From Entomortierella parvispora E1425 (lineage: Eukaryota; Fungi; Mortierellomycota): DNA of 64,000 nt. The position numbers and the translations under genes were made by a program. Positions 51,235-63,392 of this stretch are shown here, piece by piece (position 1 is the stretch's first letter; the number at the start of each line of letters is the position of its first letter). The stretch spans positions 1,488,001 through 1,552,000 of the forward strand of contig BQFW01000006.1 in the NCBI GenBank assembly GCA_020891255.1, read 5' to 3'. The notes under the pieces were generated by a model that was given only the letters and a program-made list of their open reading frames with translations, did no database searches and was not told where the DNA came from.

Positions 51235-51597
51235 CTAAGCCAGAGGTTTGCCCTCGCGTGTCTCCTTTGTCGCATCGTTGGAGGCCGCTGTGGGAGGACT
51301 GACGGGATGCGAACCTTGCTGCTGCTGCATATCACCCTTGGTGATGTTGGCCTTTCCACGCGCTTCCATGGCTGGATCCTGAGTGAAGGAGCCAACCGCC
51401 TGCTCGACTTGACCCTGAAGACTGTGTCCGACTCCGTGAAGCTGGGTTTTGGCGTCGGCCATCTTTTGGTTGGCCTCTGCCTGTTCCTTTTGGTTGGCAC
51501 CGCTGGCGGCCAGATCGGGGTATCCCAAAGTCTCGCCGATAGTCTGCTTGGCGGCTCCGATGTAGGAGTTGGCGACGTTTTGCATGCGTTCAGTCAT
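51235..51597 (-). CDS. CsbD/Hmp1-like hydrophilin stress protein (paralogue 1, C-terminally extended)
   Basis: NSYIGAAKQTIGETLG...GQVEQAVGSFTQDPAMEARGKANITKG; TATAAA at 51678-51673. Confidence 0.85.
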   Translation of the reverse strand: MTERMQNVANSYIGAAKQTIGETLGYPDLAASGANQKEQAEANQKMADAKTQLHGVGHSLQGQVEQAVGSFTQDPAMEARGKANITKGDMQQQQGSHPVSPPTAASNDATKETREGKPLA

Positions 51598-52852: not shown

Positions 52853-53137
52853 TTAGACGTTGCGCTTGACTTCACCTCGGGCAATGTTGGCATGCCCCTC
52901 TGCCTCCATCTTGCTGTTTCCGACTAAGGAACCGACCGTCTTTTGGACGTTTCCCCCAATAGAGTGACGGAGACCTTCGGCATGAGTCTTGGCATCAGCA
53001 GTGGCCTGGGCAGCGTCGGCCTGAGCCTTCTTAGCAGCGCCCTCTGCGGCCATAGTGGAGTTTCCGATCGCGTTTCCGAGAGTTTGTTTGGCGCCTCCCA
53101 TGTAAGAGTTGGCAGTGTTGGAGAATCTGTCGGTCAT
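52853..53137 (-). CDS. CsbD/Hmp1-like hydrophilin stress protein (paralogue 2)
   Basis: NSYMGGAKQTLGNAIG...GNVQKTVGSLVGNSKMEAEGHANIARG; TATAAAA upstream near 53232. Confidence 0.85.
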   Translation of the reverse strand: MTDRFSNTANSYMGGAKQTLGNAIGNSTMAAEGAAKKAQADAAQATADAKTHAEGLRHSIGGNVQKTVGSLVGNSKMEAEGHANIARGEVKRNV

Positions 53138-53483: not shown

Positions 53484-53517
<34 letters not shown>

Positions 53518-53942: not shown

Positions 53943-53974
<32 letters not shown>

Positions 53975-54243
53975 CGTACCTCTCTGATCTGCCCGCCAAC
54001 CCAGGGACTCTTCCTCCCAACTGATCAGAGGATCATGAAATAGCAATACGGAGATATGAAGAATAAACTGAGTCGATGAATTCATTTGTCGTTTGTCCGT
54101 GAGCAGTTGCTGCATCAGCATTAGACCATGGAGGCCCAAAGGCATAGAAGGGAAACTATATGGCAGGTGTTTGGTGCTTGTCAAGATTGCACTCGAAAGA
54201 AGAACGAGGGGGCTTCCTCACAAATAGTTGGAGCTCCCTCTCT

Positions 54244-54274
<31 letters not shown>

Positions 54275-54521: not shown

Positions 54522-56856
54522 TTAATAGGCATACTCTTCGTAGTCGGGGTGGTAACCATGGAAGTTAGTACCGCCATAGATGCAGTGATCCAGAGCATCC
54601 TTGTTGGTGGGAGTATTCTCTGAAGGGTTGCCCCACCATTCGGGGAATGCACCGCCCCATGAATTGACGATGAAGAAAATGGCCAGACCGCAAATGGCAA
54701 CACCGGTATCCAGGGCGGCGGAGGTAAGGTAGTTGTATCTTGCCCACCAGTTGTAACGGTAACGTCTGAGGATGTAAGCAAAGATGAAACCAATGAAGAG
54801 ACCGTTGGTGTACATGTAAGGAAGAGCTGGGGGCATGTAACTGGTGGCAGCCAAGAGCACGGGCCAGTGAATGTTGCTCAAGAGTCTGTTGTTGGGGAAC
54901 TTCTTGGAAAGAAGCCAGGTAATGACTGGGAGGATGGCTCCGACAAGGAAACCCCACTGGACGGTACTGTAGAGAGCACCATCCTTGTTACCGAAGACGC
55001 GAGCGGGTCCAATGGCACCCCAAATGACAGAGGCTGAGTAGAAGGTTCTGGTGTTACGGCAAGTGAATGGGTAGCCCTTGATGGGGTCACAGACGAAAGG
55101 ACGGGTATCAATCAACCAAGTGGCGGTACCCAAGTTGATGATGCAGGAGATGATAGCAGAGACCAGCTGAGCCATGAACATGACTCTTGGGGGAATCTTC
55201 ATGTAGTGTCCCAACTTCAAGTCACCGACGAAAGAAAGAGCCTGGACGTTGACAATGTAACCATAGGTCTTGAAGGTGACGTTGGCAATGGCATGGCCAG
55301 GGAGGAGGTAACCAATAAGATACTCAGTGACGACGTTAAGACCGGGCTGTTGGTTGGTAACGGCCTGAACAACTCCAACGGGAAGAAGGAAAATGATGGA
55401 GATACAGAAGGCCAAGAGAAGTGCCCACCAAGGCATGTAGTCCCAAACAACACAGGTAACCATGGACAAAGCAAAGGTGATAACTCCAAGCAAGCCGTAC
55501 CACCAATCTGGAACCTCGGGGTAAACGCGCATGAGGCGGGAATGGATATCATCAGTCTCTTGGCGAGCAGCCTTCCAGCGAGAAACAATCTCAGGGCCAT
55601 TGAAGAGGGCGACGTGAACAATGGTCGCGGTCAAACCAGCGAAACCAACTCCATAAGTGAGTGCAAAGAAGGAGTCCATGCGGAGAGGGCCATAGGCTTG
55701 GTACAAGCTCTCGCTGAGAACACCGTTGCTGTCGAGCACAGCGGACTTATCATAAGTAGTTCCATTAATCTGGAACAACTCGGCAGAGACAATGGGATAG
55801 TTCTTGGAATCCCAAAGGTTGGTGTAGTAGGCCCATGGAACCATGATCCAGGCAACGACGATAAAACCAACCAGTACATTGACCTGAGCGAACCAAGGAG
55901 TGATCATGGGCTGAATAACTTGGGTGGCACCAGCCCAGTCCAAGGCGATAACACCGATACCGAGACCATTGGATCCCGTAACCTGGGCCAAAGCGATGTT
56001 GTTGGGGCTAATCCAGCAGATCCAGGCAATGTATCCAAGAGTAGGGAAAATGAGGCCAGGAAGCCAGTAGTAACAGAACGAAGCAAAGGCCACGATACCG
56101 AAGTACTTCATGCGAGACATGCGACCAGCTTCATGGATATCAGCTTCAGCGTGAAGAGAACGGAAAAGCGAAGCATACACAAGATTGGAGGGCCAAACCA
56201 TGTGAGCGGGATAAACCAGGAAACGACGAACGGCACCGGCCAAGGCGAAACCAGTAATCTGGGTAGTAAGGACCAGGAACATGCCGGCAACGAAAGTCTT
56301 CTCCGAGGAATACCAGATCTTTTGCAAGATCACAATATCGACGGCGTAGGCAGTTCCAGTGTTACAAGCGACCATTGTTCCGATCAGGACGTGCTCCTTG
56401 ATGGAGAAGGGACCGGGGTTCAAGGACCACTTGTAACCGAAGGTATTCCATTGGCGGGTGGGCAGGACTTTGGCCATGAAGTGACCCATGGGAAGAGAGA
56501 GCAGGGCACAGACAGCGTAGCCAAGCTGGATCTGAATCTGACGAAGGTAGAAGAACTGGTTGACGAAGGAGACAACGCAAGTCCACAGCAATCCGAGGGA
56601 CCACATGCGGAAGGTGTTGCAAGGGATCGAGGGGTCATCGGTGTCTGGCGAGTTGAAGGGTCCAGAACAATGGATTAGCCACTTCATATCAACTACTAAA
56701 ACTGAACCTGCAGTTGAAGATGGCGTACTTACTGGAAATAGTGACACGAACTTCCTCAATGGGGGAGTCATCCTCCTCTTCAAGCTGGACGTTGGGGTGA
56801 TCGCCCTCGACTTTCTCGTCGATGTATTTTTCGGTGTGGGCTTCTTCCTTGCTCAT
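54522..56856 (-). CDS. OPT-family oligopeptide transporter (Isp4/Opt1-like), 2 exons (56856-56733, 56644-54522), 748 aa
   Basis: SPIEEVRVTISNTDDP after splicing, SLNPGPFSIKEH, MVWPSNL, NQQPGLNV, DLKLGHYMKIPPR, IWGAIGP, YLTSAALDTG motifs; GTAAGT..CAG intron. Confidence 0.95.
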
Positions 56857-57159
56857 GATGAAGAAGAGAAGAGGACGGGGAGAGAGGGGGGGGGGGGTGA
56901 GGTGGGTTCAAAAAGCACAAAGAAAAAAGAACAAGGGGAGTCAGGTCCTACTTATATCTGACCCGATTCCTGATGGGAAGGAGTCTCTACAGGCCTGGAC
57001 TGGTGGCGAGGCACTCTCGGGTTGTGGAAAAACTTATCGTTTACCACGATTCCTGGAAATGTCGAGAGAGATTTGGACGGGGAAAGTGAGAGCCTCTGGG
57101 TAACAACTCAAATCCAGGCGACCCGCTTTGGACCAAAGCGGATTGAATCCCAAGAATTG

Positions 57160-59130
57160 GGGGACGGAGCGTGCGGAAATGGGCAAAACAAGGCCATGCT
57201 CGTGGTTTGTTTACCTCGCCATTGCATCCATTGAGCCAATCAAGGAGGGGCTCTTTCATAACACTTAGCTTTCTTGAAGTCCGCAGGTCATGCGCTCTTG
57301 TTCAGTCTCAATACCATTCCCTCGCTCTTCTGGTGCTTTTCAATCGTTGACGAATGGGATCGATTCCAGGAGGGTGAGCACGCGAACGAAAAAAAAAGAG
57401 TCTTCCCAGGCCCAGTGCTTTTTTTCTTGTTTGTTTGTTTGACCGAGAAATATGTTTTTTTTTTTTCCTAATCGCCTGCTTCGCATCAATGTTGCCTCTG
57501 CAGTTGGACAAATGTGTTTTACCTTTCAGAGAGTCGTGTCCTCCAAAGAACTCAGTTTTTCCGCTCTGCTCCTCCCCTCTTTATGGGAAACATGAGAGCG
57601 ATGCAAAAAAAAAAAAGTTTGTTTCTTGTGACCACCGCAAAGCGCGAACTAACCCGCTTGCTCGGCAGTATGGAAAGCACTTCTCGGGATAGCAAGGGAA
57701 CCGGGGTTCGCCTGTTTTTCATGGTCCAAAATTGATTACCACCATGATGAAAGGTTAGCAGACCCAACTCGTCTCTCTCCGCAAAAGTTAGGTCCGTCGC
57801 CTTGGCAATAATGGCATCAACTGTTCATAGTACCAGCAAATCATGTACAATGTACTATGCTGAACATTCGTGAGCTCAAACACGATCGAACAACTATTAC
57901 AGTTGTATACTATAATACATAGAACTGTCCCAGGCTCTTGACTGAGGTCAACGGCGGAGGTTTGAACAACAAGTAAACAAAAAAACAATTTTATTTGTCA
58001 ATTCTTGTCCTGCTGTTGGCCAACATCCGATTTTGGTCTAGGGTCCCCTTGTGTTGCGCCTTCTCTGTGTTCTTTCAACAAAGGATCGCTCCACGGGAAA
58101 ATATTGTGCTGTATCCAAGCTTTCGAGGTGAGTAAGTGAGCAAAGGCATCATTTTTTTTTTTTTTTGCTCTGCCGCTTGACTGGTCTTCAAATTCATTGC
58201 TGAAGTTCACTTGCGATCGCCCCTCTGCAGACTGCTTGACCTTTTCTTTCGAAGACATCTTGTTCAAAGAACACCCACCTGTTCTCTTGCAGCTTACTTC
58301 AGGCAGGATTCGACAGATCTGGTTCCTGCACCGTGCTCACTCGGCCATTTAGGCATTTTGGACATTAAAGTACTCATACCCCTATGCCGACACACCTTCT
58401 CCTCGGGGTTCCCCATTGGATGAGTATCTTGCCTGGTCACAAGGCGGTGCAGCTCCTCGGATACCTTCACCGGTACACGAATTGAAGTGAAACCCGGAAG
58501 GTTCATTCAGGCACAAAAAAAATTAAGAGCGAGTGCAGCTCCCAAAAAAAAATGTGACGCAGGATTGGTCAAGAAGTGATGATTGCGCCTTTCGGAATCG
58601 CTTCCGAGTTGTGGTGGGATCACACGTTTGCACGCATGCAAGTTGGGCACACAAGCACGACAGATGAAAACTCATCCGTGCGCACCAGCACTAGAACAAT
58701 GGAAGGACCTATTCTATAACGGAAGAAAGCGCTAGTTCAAAAAGAACAAAGTGGAGATCCAGGTACGCACGGATGGTATCCTCGGAAAAATGAAAAAAAA
58801 AAAAAAAAAAAAAAAAAGCCCTTCGAAAGAGATCATACCCGTGAGTGTCGATCGAATGGTGCTTTTTGGGTATGGGATAAAAAAAATTGTTCTAAAGCTT
58901 CTGCAACAAGAACTCGCCGCAATTGAGGAATCTCCCACGGTTGGGCGATCGTTATTGGAAAGAACTGCAGACAAGTCGCCAGCTGCCAAAAAAAAAGGCC
59001 GATTTGGGGTGGTCTGTCAGTTCAACCCTGCAGAACCTTGACTGTGGCCAAAAATTCGAGTCTGTGTCACCAAGCGACCTCTAGCTTCTTTTCGATGCCT
59101 TGCTTTTACCCGTCCGCCTCTCCCCTCTTT
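57160..59130 (+). repeat. Non-coding block U1 upstream of the OPT gene; diverged direct duplicate of 60545-62170
   Basis: Shared colinear anchors such as gcttttcaatcgttgacga, cagtttttccgctctgctc, gatcatacccgtgagtg and ccctgcagaaccttgactgtggccaaaaattcg. Confidence 0.85.
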
Positions 59131-59249
59131 TTCCCTCGCGTGGCTGGCAACTCGTCTCCAATGACCCTCCAATGATCCAGCAGAGGGATTGACGAGGAGA
59201 TTATGGGATGGGGTTAACTGTGTGTTTTCATAGCCATCCTCGGATTTCC

Positions 59250-59620
59250 TTATTCGCTTTGCACAAATCCTTCACTCACAATGGGGTAGCTCCTGGTGTC
59301 GCAAAGGTTAGTGCAGTAGCCCTCACGAAGGTTAGTGTAGTAGCCCCCAAGGAAGTATGACTGGGATAACGAGGACAAAACCAACCAAGGCATTGACCTA
59401 AAAGAACCAAGGAGTAACCATGGGCTGAATAACTTGAGTGGTACCAGCCAGCCAAAGGCAACAACACTGATACAGAGACCATTGGATCCCATAATCTGGG
59501 CCAGAGTAATATTGCTAAGGCTAATCTAGCAAATCCAGGCGAAGTATCCCAGGATAGCGAGATGCGGCCAGGAAGCCAGTAATAGCAGAACAGTATGCAC
59601 TATAGTACACGAGACAAGGA
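59250..59620 (-). pseudogene. Decayed internal fragment of a duplicated OPT gene
   Basis: LGYFAWIC*ISLSNITLAQIMGSNGLCISV...YYTNL...YPIVS vs LGYIAWICWISPNNIALAQVTGSNGLGIGV...YYTNLWDSKNYPIVS; in-frame stop, frameshifts and a short internal duplication. Confidence 0.85.
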
Positions 59621-59914
59621 GGATTGTAGACGAACAGGGGCTGGGGCAGGATCTGGCTGGCAGGCGCCCCGTTGGTGGGTTGGATGGGCTACCTAGGGAG
59701 TCAATAGTCATAGCGAGGCAGTGGAAAAGAGCAATCGCGTGATGTCACTGTAGTACTACCAACAGTGCTGCACTCTTTTTTTTTTCTGTATGATACACGG
59801 CGTATTCATCGAGGAAAGGACAGCTTATTTATTTCAACAGGTGTCGATTGACGATTTCGTATGGCCAAGGTACTTTGTATTCCAATGGAGTGGCAATATT
59901 GACTAGGAGACAAC

Positions 59915-60145
59915 CTAATCGCAGTTGGGGTAGTTTTCTTTAAAACCTCGAAGCTCGGGGTCACCACAGCGCTTCTTGAGAACAACGGGAGGAACAATCT
60001 CATCGCAGTTGGGGTAATTTTCTTTAAACCCTCTAAGCTCGGGGTCACCGCAACGCTTGGAAAGAGTGCGGGGGGCAGCTTCGGCCATCGACAAGACAGC
60101 CAATGTGGCCATGACCAGGAAGGAGAAAGGCTTAAGGGCGACCAT
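59915..60145 (-). CDS. Secreted Kex2-processed repeat peptide precursor (76 aa) with two copies of CGDPELRGFKENYPNCD
   Basis: Signal peptide MVALKPFSFLVMATLAVLSMAEA, propeptide APRTLSKR, core, spacer EIVPPVVLKKR, identical second core; repeats differ only at synonymous sites; AATAAA at 59833-59828. Confidence 0.85.
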   Translation of the reverse strand: MVALKPFSFLVMATLAVLSMAEAAPRTLSKRCGDPELRGFKENYPNCDEIVPPVVLKKRCGDPELRGFKENYPNCD

Positions 60146-60147
60146 GG

Positions 60148-60302
60148 CTGAAGATGCAAGTTATGGCAGAGGTTAGACACGATATGAGATCAAAGAACGG
60201 GTCCTGTATCATTGATGGAAACACCGGAACTTACTGAGTTTTTGGAATGAGGAAGGGATTGATTGTAAGGCAATGAAAGTTGTCAGAATGGCGATATTTA
60301 TA
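60148..60302 (-). promoter_or_regulatory. TATA box and 5'-UTR intron of the peptide precursor gene
   Basis: TATAAATA 60302-60295; intron 60234-60148 with GTAAGT donor, CTAAC branch site (60176-60172) and CAG acceptor 2 nt before ccATGG. Confidence 0.75.
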
Positions 60303-60544
60303 AGAAACGCGAGCGGGTGTGGTGTTTAGATGTAAATTGGACCATGAGCTGTTTGATGATGTTCTTGTCATGGGTAAAAATTTGCTCAGAGGGCGCGGGA
60401 GAGGGCGCGGGGTGGGCGCGTCTGGGTCTCCTTGTTTACTTGCCGTTTTGAGTAAGTTTTCTTCACGAGGACGGCTCTGGTGCAAGCAACCTGCCCATTT
60501 TTTTCCGGATCAACCCCCTGCCTCCAAGGCGTGTTATTGGTTGA

Positions 60545-62170
60545 GAGACGGATTGTACGGAATTGAACAAACCAAGTACGCGCACAGGGTCGATGTACCT
60601 AGCCATTGTGTCCAATGAGCCCATCGAAGAGGGTCACTTTCGACCAAACGTGGAGTCGCGTATTCTTGCTCAGCAACCTGCATCTCCACCTTAACTCGTT
60701 GACTGATGCTAGTTCATGTTGGAAGTAGAAAAAGAGACCTTTCCCAAGAGAATCAAAACTGTATTCCCTTTGACAAACTAGAGGAAGGCAGGCTAATACC
60801 ACCTCCTCGCCCTTCCAGCGCTTTTCAATCGTTGACGATTGGATATTTATTCCAGAAGAGCCGAACAGACGAACGAGAAAGAATCCTCCTAGGTCTAACA
60901 CTTTTGTTCTCAGTCTCTCATGACCAAGATGTTTGTTACTTTAATTGTCTAGTCCCCCATCTGTTCATTTCATGACCGCCTGTTAGAGTCCACCAAATTC
61001 TTTCATGGGTTCTTATAATTTTGTGGGACTTATTCAAAATCAATTTAGTCCAATGTTTGGCTCGTTCGGTCACACAAGGGTAGTGCGAATCATATTCAAA
61101 AGCCCATTGTAAAAAATATAAGAACCCACGAAAGGATTTGGTGGACTCTACGCTTGTCCTCGTCCCTGCGAACAGAGCAATGCCCTCGACCTATTTTCGA
61201 GACGATTCAGTTTTTCCGCTCTGCTCTCTTCTTAAGGAGGAAAAAAAAGTAGTTCAAATTCTTGTGACCACAACAAAGCGAGAAGTATGGAACCCGTTTG
61301 CCTTGGCGGATGGAAAGCATTTGTCGGTATGGTGGGAATGGTGGGGACCGGGGTTGACATGCTCCAGAAACCACCATAGTGAATAGTCAGCAAAACCAAG
61401 CTCGTTTCTGTCTGCGAAGGTTGTTCTATGACCTTGGCAAAGATGGTTCAGTTGAACAACTCATTTATTTAGAACGTATTTTGCTGAACTTCCGTGAGTT
61501 CAACATCCACGATGGCGTTACCAGTATTGCGGTCACAGAACCGTCTCAACGATTCTTTTTGACCCTGAAGAAAGGGAGGCAGGTTAGTAATGTTCCTTCA
61601 TAAAAAAATATAAAAAAATATTTTATGACAAGTTGGTAGAAAAGCGATCGATCGTGCCTGTCGGCATGGCTTCCGATCTATGTTGGTGGAATGACGCGTT
61701 CAAGTTGGGCGCACAAGCAGAAAGATGAAACCCCATCCATGCGCACCAGCACCAAAACAATGGAAGCAGTCTATGCGGAAGAAAGGACTAGTTCAATAAG
61801 ATCAAAAAAGGATACCATTCGTGCATGAGTGGTGTCCTTCCGGAAAAATGAAAGAACTTGTTTTTCGAAATAGATCATACCCGTGAGTGACGATCAATAG
61901 ATGTCATGCTTTGGGTTGTGGGATAAGAGAATTGTTCTAAAGCAACGTTTTCAACAATAACACGCCGCAATGGAGCAATCTCCCACGGTGGGCGATCGTT
62001 ATGGGAAAGAATTGCAGACATGTCGCCAACTGCCAAAAAAAAAAAAAGCCGATTTGGGGTGGTCTATCAGTCCTCCATCGTTCACCCCTGCAGAACCTTG
62101 ACTGTGGCCAAAAATTCGGGTCTGTGTCACTTTCGACGCCTTGCTTTTTTACCCGAGCGCCTCTCCCCAT
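60545..62170 (+). repeat. Non-coding block U2 upstream of the peptide precursor gene; diverged direct duplicate of 57160-59130
   Basis: Colinear alignment by eye to U1, with private indels (about 60900-61190 in U2, about 57960-58500 in U1). Confidence 0.85.
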
Positions 62171-62382
62171 TTTTGCTAGTTTTGGCTGCCAATTCCTGGA
62201 AAATGGCCTTCTATTGTCGGTAGGGGGTCAATGTTAACAGTGCCACCCCCGGATTTCCTCGGTGAATTGTTGACACCAAATTGTGGCCATGGTTTTTATT
62301 TTGGTTTATTCCTGGTCCAGTTCGTGTGTCTATGAACCAAATTGAGGGCAAGAACCCCAACCCCGCATGTTGGAGAGGACGA

Positions 62383-62460
62383 GCAGTTTGGCGACTTGTC
62401 TGTGTTCTTTCCAATGACGATCGCCTACCGTGGGGGATTACTCAATTGAGGCGAGTTCTT
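62383..62460 (-). repeat. Inverted third copy of an about 80-bp element also at 58908-58986 and 61956-62033
   Basis: Reverse complement aagaactcgcctcaattgagtaatcccccacggtaggcgatcgtcattggaaagaacacagacaagtcgccaaactgc matches the U1 copy with about 10 differences. Confidence 0.85.
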
Positions 62461-63392
62461 GCAGCAAAAGGCATCTGTTGGTCGAACTTGAAGAAGGCTC
62501 CCGTCAGGAGCAGCATCGAGAAAGAACAAAATGAGCGTAGAAAGGAAAAAAAAGAAAAAAAAAAAAAAAAAAAAAAAAAAGAGGTAACGAGGGACATTCA
62601 TGTCCAGACCATGACTGCGGTGACTGAGCACAAGCGTGCGGTTCTCTGAGCAACAAAATGAATGACATGACACAGGAGGAGCATCACGATTGCCCCTTCA
62701 CCCCGGGTCGTTCGCCTCTAGTCACCGTCCAAAGCAATAGGTCGACCCTTCTAACCTCCACCTACAAATGTTCAGCTTACTTCAATGGCCAGGATCTCAA
62801 AGGTGAGACGGCTGAACTCGATAGGACTTTTCGTTGCTCTGTTCCTTGTCTCTTCGAGGCCGAAGTCAGGGGGATTTTTTTTTCTTGGCCGGCACAGTTG
62901 AGGGCACTCCTATTGAACCTTTCATGGGCCTGCTCCAGGGACTCTGCTCTAACATGGTCAAATACCTGCCTGCTTTTGCGGAGTCATAGTACTGGAAGGA
63001 GGAGCAGTAAGGAAGAGGGAGAGGATAGAAGGAGGGCAGAGAGAGCAAAGGAATCCTCCTTTGACTACGCAGTGACGGACGCGTTCCTTCTCGAATCTCT
63101 GTCTCTCTTTCCTGTCGACGTGACAAGCATCTGTCAAACATGCTGAATACCTACTCTGATTGTCTCTACTGCTATACGGCATGGCCTCCTGGGTACAAGG
63201 CGCGGGCGCAGGAGGGGAGCACGTCGTTCCAACCAATCAGAGAGCAGGCAACACATAGATTCGCTTTTTCTGAATTCTTCTCAGAAAAAGCGAGTCGGGA
63301 TTGCATTTCAAAGAGCTGAATCGACAGGGACAAGGAGACGCAGATCATGTTTAATGTTTTATTCGGAAAACTCTCTCACACTCTCTCTTTCA

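Follow-up and report, generated by a model that had tools for sequence, protein, structure and literature searches.

The window analysed here is a 64,000-nt stretch of contig BQFW01000006.1 of Entomortierella parvispora E1425, and all positions refer to it unless another locus is named. The called genes around the feature of interest follow one another, in minus-strand order, as EPL1, TFIID-18kDa, a C9orf72-like gene, the peptide gene, an OPT gene, two CsbD genes and a gene for an F-box-like protein; the neighbouring OPT protein of Entomortierella parvispora carries the locus tag EMPS_04514. The peptide gene comprises the following elements, where X2 denotes a sequencing run described below.

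60295-60302, minus strand: TATA box TATAAATA, read from the letters
60235-60252, minus strand: observed part of the non-coding exon 1 (letters 1-18 of the X2 contig, 0 mismatches)
60148-60234, minus strand: 5'-UTR intron of 87 nt, GTAAGT...CTAAC...CAG, skipped exactly by the X2 contig
60172-60176, minus strand: CTAAC of the intron, 25 nt before the intron 3' end
59814-60147, minus strand: exon 2, made of 2 nt of 5' UTR, the CDS and a 101-nt 3' UTR (letters 19-352 of the X2 contig, 0 mismatches)
59915-60145, minus strand: CDS of 76 codons plus TAG, annotated product P0001 in GCA_020891255.1
60077-60145, minus strand: predicted signal peptide, residues 1-23 (hydrophobicity profile, -3/-1 rule)
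60053-60076, minus strand: pro-region APRTLS followed by KR (L-S-K-R site), from the translation
60002-60052, minus strand: core 1, 17 residues with Cys at positions 1 and 16, from the translation
59969-60001, minus strand: spacer EIVPPVVLK followed by KR (L-K-K-R site), from the translation
59918-59968, minus strand: core 2, identical to core 1 at the protein level, from the translation
59828-59833, minus strand: AATAAA poly(A) signal, read from the letters; the transcript contig ends 14 nt downstream (59814)

Two runs (X1 and X2) of the sample that probably gave the assembly were compared with positions 59300-60700. Run X1 spans this whole region in one contig at a depth of 78. In run X2, the depth is zero in 59300-59813, in the intron (60148-60234) and in 60253-60700, and the region is represented by a contig of 352 nt whose letters 1-18 correspond to 60252-60235 and letters 19-352 to 60147-59814, with no mismatch. 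This contig joins 60235 straight to 60147, so that exactly the predicted 87 nt are missing, and the boundaries of the GTAAGT/CTAAC/CAG intron proposed in the 5' UTR by the first-pass annotation are thereby supported, albeit with an exon-1 side of the joint of only 18 nt, under the 31-nt rule of thumb. The 5' end of the contig (60252) lies 43-50 nt downstream of the TATA box, and the true 5' end of exon 1 may be slightly further upstream. Its word depth of 14.4 (exon 2) shows the presence of the transcript, not its abundance.

Run X2 is listed as "DNA?", and a search for RNA runs returned none; its RNA nature is deduced from the coverage and the absent intron. Since a genomic library would neither stop at those ends nor miss the intron, X2 is taken to be the RNA-seq assembly of the strain, and we read the 352-nt contig as the spliced mRNA of an expressed gene. 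The genome announcement of strain E1425 (accessions BQFW01000001 to BQFW01000019) describes sequencing of DNA and RNA from an endobacterium-cured line grown on CMMY medium, deposition of the RNA-seq data and annotation by AUGUSTUS (PMC8759367); the RNA-seq accession is DRA013164. The RNA came from one cured strain growing vegetatively as mycelium, in the absence of a partner.

The observed part of exon 1 is devoid of ATG, and the first ATG of the spliced mRNA is the start of the 76-codon ORF, in the strong context CC ATG G with A at -3 and G at +4. The intron contains an upstream ATG with a 26-codon uORF, both of which are taken out by splicing; in unspliced RNA, the first ATG would be the intronic one, opening this uORF. 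The codon-usage log-odds of the peptide ORF is 0.19, inside the range of 0.13-0.41 spanned by the long ORFs of the window, hence in codon usage it resembles the real genes of the window; by this measure it ranks 13th among 111 small ORFs. Assembly GCA_020891255.1 provides the only record of the exact 76-aa product, on contig BQFW01000006.1. All parts of the gene anatomy read earlier from the letters alone (TATA box, intron, ATG context, ORF and AATAAA) are in place, and the X2 contig agrees with them. The peptide ORF is thus a real gene that is annotated in GenBank, transcribed and spliced.

The N-terminus of the product resembles a signal peptide. Kyte-Doolittle means over 15 residues reach 1.5-2.15 across residues 1-25, and the segment consists of one Lys, a 15-residue hydrophobic core and AEA ahead of the putative cut. 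The -3/-1 rule fits a cut after A23, between AEA and AP, with alternatives after residues 16, 19 and 21. Both inspection and the Kyte-Doolittle profile show a single hydrophobic stretch, residues 1-23, and none later in the protein. For the 53-residue mature part, AF2 gave no confident fold (pLDDT 59.6, pTM 0.32) and was uninformative on disulfide pairing, and the ESM Atlas model of the protein has a pLDDT of 0.42. Such weak fold confidence would be expected of a pro-peptide that is processed, more than of a mini-protein with a stable fold. Neighbours in language-model space, which are to be taken as hints only, include fungal hypothetical proteins, MF_alpha, apidaecin, FMRFamide-type and similar multi-copy pro-peptide precursors.

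Like the yeast alpha-factor site SLDKR, both predicted cleavage sites combine Lys-Arg at P2-P1 with Leu at P4. In the proposed pathway, the N-terminal 23 residues would direct import into the ER and then be removed, the two Cys of each core would pair to close a 16-residue disulfide ring, a late-Golgi kexin would cut after L-S-K-R and L-K-K-R, and a Kex1-type carboxypeptidase would trim the basic tail. A 25-mer and a 17-mer would then be released and act outside the cell. The products are unequal because no dibasic site separates core 1 from the spacer, so that the first one carries an 8-residue tail. The predicted 25-mer (core plus EIVPPVVL) has a net charge of about -3 and an oxidised monoisotopic mass of ~2800.32, and the predicted 17-mer a net charge of about -2 and an oxidised monoisotopic mass of ~1953.80; the 53-mer, if left uncleaved, would have a mass of 6060. 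The peptides being acidic and not amphipathic-cationic, a ligand-like role is mildly favoured: signalling or recognition, directed at the own species or at another organism, seems more likely than membrane-lytic antimicrobial action. We infer ER import, the kexin and carboxypeptidase steps and the disulfide from the yeast alpha-factor pathway and from the literature on Kex2-processed repeat proteins, or KEPs (PMC6339444, PMC7329392).

The two KR+core units, of 57 nt each, differ at 5 of the 57 bases (CGT/CGC, TGC/TGT, AGA/CGA, GGG/GGT and AAT/AAC), all five differences being synonymous. In the remaining five frames of the same stretch, the copies are separated by 5-8 amino-acid changes, and four of these frames contain stops. 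Random single changes in the KR+core codons are synonymous in 19-27% of cases, and the chance that five out of five random substitutions are synonymous is 2.7e-4 to 1.5e-3, a range computed for transition/transversion ratios of 1 to 5. Expressed per site, the units differ at 5 of ~13 synonymous sites (~0.4 per site) versus 0 of ~44 non-synonymous sites. The former value argues that the internal duplication is not recent, and the latter that the peptide sequence has been kept constant since it took place. Moreover, the pro-region and the spacer are mutually unrelated in sequence, whereas the cores are identical. Identical cores with purely synonymous divergence indicate selection on the peptide; the five synonymous differences, the core coordinates and the purifying selection put forward in the first-pass annotation are therefore borne out. 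Its further suggestion that the precursor was formerly longer is weak and amounts to a guess: similarity between the units runs only ~8-14 nt beyond the stop codon, and no remnant of a third repeat unit is detectable downstream of the stop.

Searches for relatives retrieved little beyond the protein itself, which was the only hit of a word-indexed protein search in 5.8 billion clusters. A phmmer search of 1.84 billion representatives gave four other matches (P0002-P0005), judged spurious because they are long, internally repetitive proteins with summed weak stretches, none of them combining a signal peptide, KR and a Cys-bracketed core. For these unrelated tandem-repeat proteins, phmmer returned E-values down to 7e-16, an illustration of the inflation of scores by repeat summation when the query is short and repetitive. 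With hmmscan, no Pfam-A family was found at E <= 10, MF_alpha and MF_alpha_N included. The sole PDB match, a designed protein aligned to the hydrophobic N-terminus, was rejected, and a scan of JGI metagenome contigs matched 600 patterns, none of which was confirmed. The OPT search shows that the protein database covers many annotated Mortierellaceae proteomes, and these therefore contain no annotated homologue.

Synteny was sought with OPT as anchor in E. beljakovae, M. claussenii, E. lignicola and E. chlamydospora (loci L002, L003 and L006-L008) and with CsbD as anchor in M. alpina and E. chlamydospora (L004 and L005); the multi-exon C9orf72-like neighbour would make a better synteny anchor than the two used. 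These seven loci, from five other Mortierellaceae species, are not syntenic with the window and have no flanking genes in common with it. A tblastn of the core in early-diverging fungi had been proposed at the outset, and its run on the seven Mortierellaceae loci found no core-like sequence.

Comparison of the window with itself revealed that the peptide gene is embedded in sequence resembling the adjacent OPT locus, with three adjoining segments.

59259-59590, minus strand: decayed OPT fragment, residues 236-338, with stops and a frame break (tblastn E = 1e-14), just 3' of the gene
59592-60540, no strand assigned: 949-nt segment holding the whole peptide gene, without counterpart in the intact OPT copy (blastn, alignment)
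60541-62216, no strand assigned: upstream copy of the OPT upstream intergenic region (57157-59174), 68-72% identical

The decayed fragment, which has no X2 coverage, is 80% identical at the DNA level to the OPT coding region (59323-59591 versus 55810-56079). Between the matching blocks, the intact copy has 1077 nt that comprise the OPT proximal promoter, exon 1, intron 1 and the codons up to ~235. A blastn of 59592-60540 against 56080-57156 gave no match, and global alignment of the 949-nt segment with the OPT 5' region gave z = -0.3, nothing above shuffles; the sole local match is a C-rich low-complexity stretch. Derivation of the peptide gene from the OPT 5' region was rejected accordingly. 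The TATA box, intron and poly(A) signal of the peptide gene all lie inside this segment, which is not OPT-derived.

These alignments place the peptide gene inside a partial, decayed copy of the neighbouring locus for the OPT oligopeptide transporter, duplicated in tandem. As 949 unrelated nt stand where the intact copy has 1077 nt, the peptide gene has taken the place of the 5' half of the duplicated OPT gene, having arisen or landed inside the decayed duplicate. The OPT-like distal upstream region has been kept, so part of the OPT regulation may be common to the peptide gene. Two further repeats occur in the surroundings. About 0.7-0.85 kb upstream of the gene lies a 39-nt inverted repeat (60984-61022/61112-61150) whose arms are 92% complementary and 89 nt apart; it might form a hairpin or mark the termini of a small mobile element. 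At 62389-62470, 84 nt of the duplicated intergenic region recur as a third, inverted copy (87% identity to 58898-58981).

In its design, the product resembles the KEPs, as had been claimed in the first-pass annotation: a signal-peptide-like N-terminus, L-x-K-R sites and repeated cores are all present. It shares with KEPs near-identical cores that each follow KR and the lack of homologues outside its lineage; by inspection and hydrophobicity profile, its signal-peptide-like N-terminus is the sole hydrophobic segment. The core repeats represent 2 x 17 of the 76 residues, or 45% of the protein, compared with the repeat content of at least 15% that defines KEPs. The survey pipeline asks for three or more similar fragments delimited by KR, RR or KK, although some alpha-pheromone precursors also have fewer than three repeats (PMC6339444); the E. 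parvispora product has two. Unlike classic KEPs, its first product is less tidy, keeping a C-terminal spacer tail, and its cores are bracketed by Cys. The gene is absent from both KEP surveys because the assembly is younger than they are (Le Marquer et al. 2019; Umemura 2020). As the KEP design is present but the repeats are fewer than three and no family profile matches, we call the precursor KEP-like in mechanism, a two-repeat borderline member.

KEPs were reported in 38 of 39 Mucoromycota strains (357 proteins), and most KEP types are genus-specific or stand-alone, with 2560 stand-alone KEPs (PMC7329392). Given that they are numerous and mostly lineage-specific in Mucoromycota, an orphan KEP-like gene in Mortierellaceae is expected rather than surprising, and the novelty implied by the first interpretation was overstated. 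That interpretation holds for a real transcribed gene, for selected cores and for the KEP design, and is weak for the longer ancestral precursor. What is new here is the acidic C-x14-C core, the transcript support and the apparent birth site inside an OPT duplicate.

Taken together, these results suggest that the locus is probably a real, expressed, lineage-specific gene of E. parvispora E1425 for a small secreted pro-peptide of the Kex2-processed-repeat type. The product might instead stay uncleaved, as a secreted 53-residue mini-protein with four Cys and an internal repeat in which the KR pairs are incidental. The four Cys allow more than one way of pairing into two disulfides, the KEP survey rule does not admit proteins with two repeats, and AF2 shows a short helix per repeat; we nevertheless regard this as unlikely, since an L-x-K-R site stands exactly before the first Cys of both repeats, neither AF2 nor ESM Atlas gives a confident fold, and unrelated spacer and pro-region sequences next to identical cores are the pattern expected if only the released core matters. 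It is quite unlikely that the ORF is young and functionless, with a remnant OPT-type promoter transcribing a decaying duplicate and the peptide either not made or idle. The synonymous nature of all five repeat differences (with none at the non-synonymous sites), the gene's own TATA box, intron, strong start context and poly(A) signal in a non-OPT segment, and a codon usage resembling that of real genes speak against it, even though the gene sits inside a decayed segmental duplicate beside an OPT pseudogene fragment, has no homologue in the databases searched and is represented by a transcript contig of modest word depth.

Two more specialised roles for a processed precursor were weighed. The combination of signal peptide and KR-delimited repeats is that of alpha-factor, and the product shares with yeast MF-alpha1 the pre-pro design, predicted Kex2 cleavage at Leu-x-Lys-Arg and Kex1 trimming; an MF_alpha cluster is also found among the language-model neighbours, with scores of 0.76 and 0.67, under the lead level of 0.9. 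A mating pheromone precursor of alpha-factor type in Mortierellomycotina is nonetheless very unlikely. In contrast to alpha-factor precursors, the product has no sequence or Pfam relationship to this group (neither MF_alpha nor MF_alpha_N matched with hmmscan at E <= 10) and no X-Ala/X-Pro dipeptides for Ste13 after KR, its core beginning with Cys-Gly right after the cleavage site. The Cys-containing alpha-pheromones of filamentous Ascomycota have 10-13 residues and a short C-x6-C spacing, whereas the core of E. parvispora, with 17 residues and a predicted C-x14-C ring, is longer than known alpha-pheromones and unlike them. In addition, one cured strain expresses the gene in its vegetative mycelium without a mating partner, and nothing within +-10 kb links it to a mating locus or receptor. 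The two Cys within each repeat do recall the Cys-containing alpha-pheromones of Sordariomycetes, Leotiomycetes and Dothideomycetes, two conserved Cys being known in alpha-pheromones of several Ascomycota classes (PMC6339444). Precursors of the ustiloxin type are likewise signal peptide plus KR-repeat proteins (PMC7329392), which would allow for a dikaritin RiPP whose cyclisation is completed by tailoring enzymes. Such a precursor is extremely unlikely, as no tailoring-enzyme gene was found among the called genes within +-10 kb (no DUF3328/UstYa, methyltransferase or oxidase; for DUF3328/UstYa, Pfam families were considered as well), and as the core lacks a Tyr-x-Ile-type motif and is, at 17 residues, long for the class.

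The secreted, Kex2-processed pro-peptide therefore remains the preferred reading, and its function can be considered in the light of the neighbouring transporter. A possible parallel is the Qsp1 peptide, an 11-mer that, unlike the E. parvispora precursor, does not derive from a KR-repeat protein. In Cryptococcus neoformans, this quorum-sensing peptide is imported by the oligopeptide transporter Opt1 (PMC7537855), and the peptide gene described here adjoins an OPT gene, behind an OPT-like upstream region. The adjacency is accounted for by the segmental duplication, and a 17-residue disulfide ring is large for OPT substrates. It is decidedly improbable that the disulfide-looped peptide is an intercellular signal (quorum- or pheromone-like, or directed at plants or bacteria) that was born in a duplicated OPT locus, has regulation in common with the transporter and is perhaps sensed or taken up through the adjacent OPT as in the Qsp1/Opt1 system. 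Were the intercellular-signal reading true, this would be the first characterised peptide signal of Mortierellomycotina.

While knowledge of the KEP class is unchanged by the E. parvispora gene, peptide communication is nearly unexplored in early-diverging fungi, and the Mortierellaceae are abundant in soil, where they live in association with plants and harbour bacteria. With a supported transcript structure, predicted products short enough for synthesis and defined masses, the gene is a clean, testable candidate. It also offers an example of a young gene under selection amid the remains of a segmental duplication.

Some minor observations concern the OPT and CsbD genes themselves. The intergenic DNA near OPT and its duplicate contains unusually long A or T homopolymer tracts of 25-31 nt (53486-53516, 53948-53975, 54247-54274, 58786-58817 and 62548-62580); their lengths are perhaps uncertain, since the assembly was built from Nanopore data, with polishing by Nanopolish and, using Illumina reads, by Pilon. 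Antisense to the OPT coding region runs a 490-codon open frame (55206-56678, plus strand), most likely a by-product of codon bias and not a gene. The two CsbD-like genes beside OPT lie in tandem on the minus strand (52853-53137 and 51235-51597), and Mortierella alpina has three tandem CsbD-like genes at a non-syntenic locus (L004, 10001-12966). In E. chlamydospora, a 6.3-kb stretch without a called gene (L007, 3641-10001) contains OPT-like sequence upstream of the annotated OPT. The position matching this gap is occupied by a second intact OPT in both E. lignicola and E. beljakovae, and the E. chlamydospora stretch may be a further OPT duplicate, decayed or unannotated.
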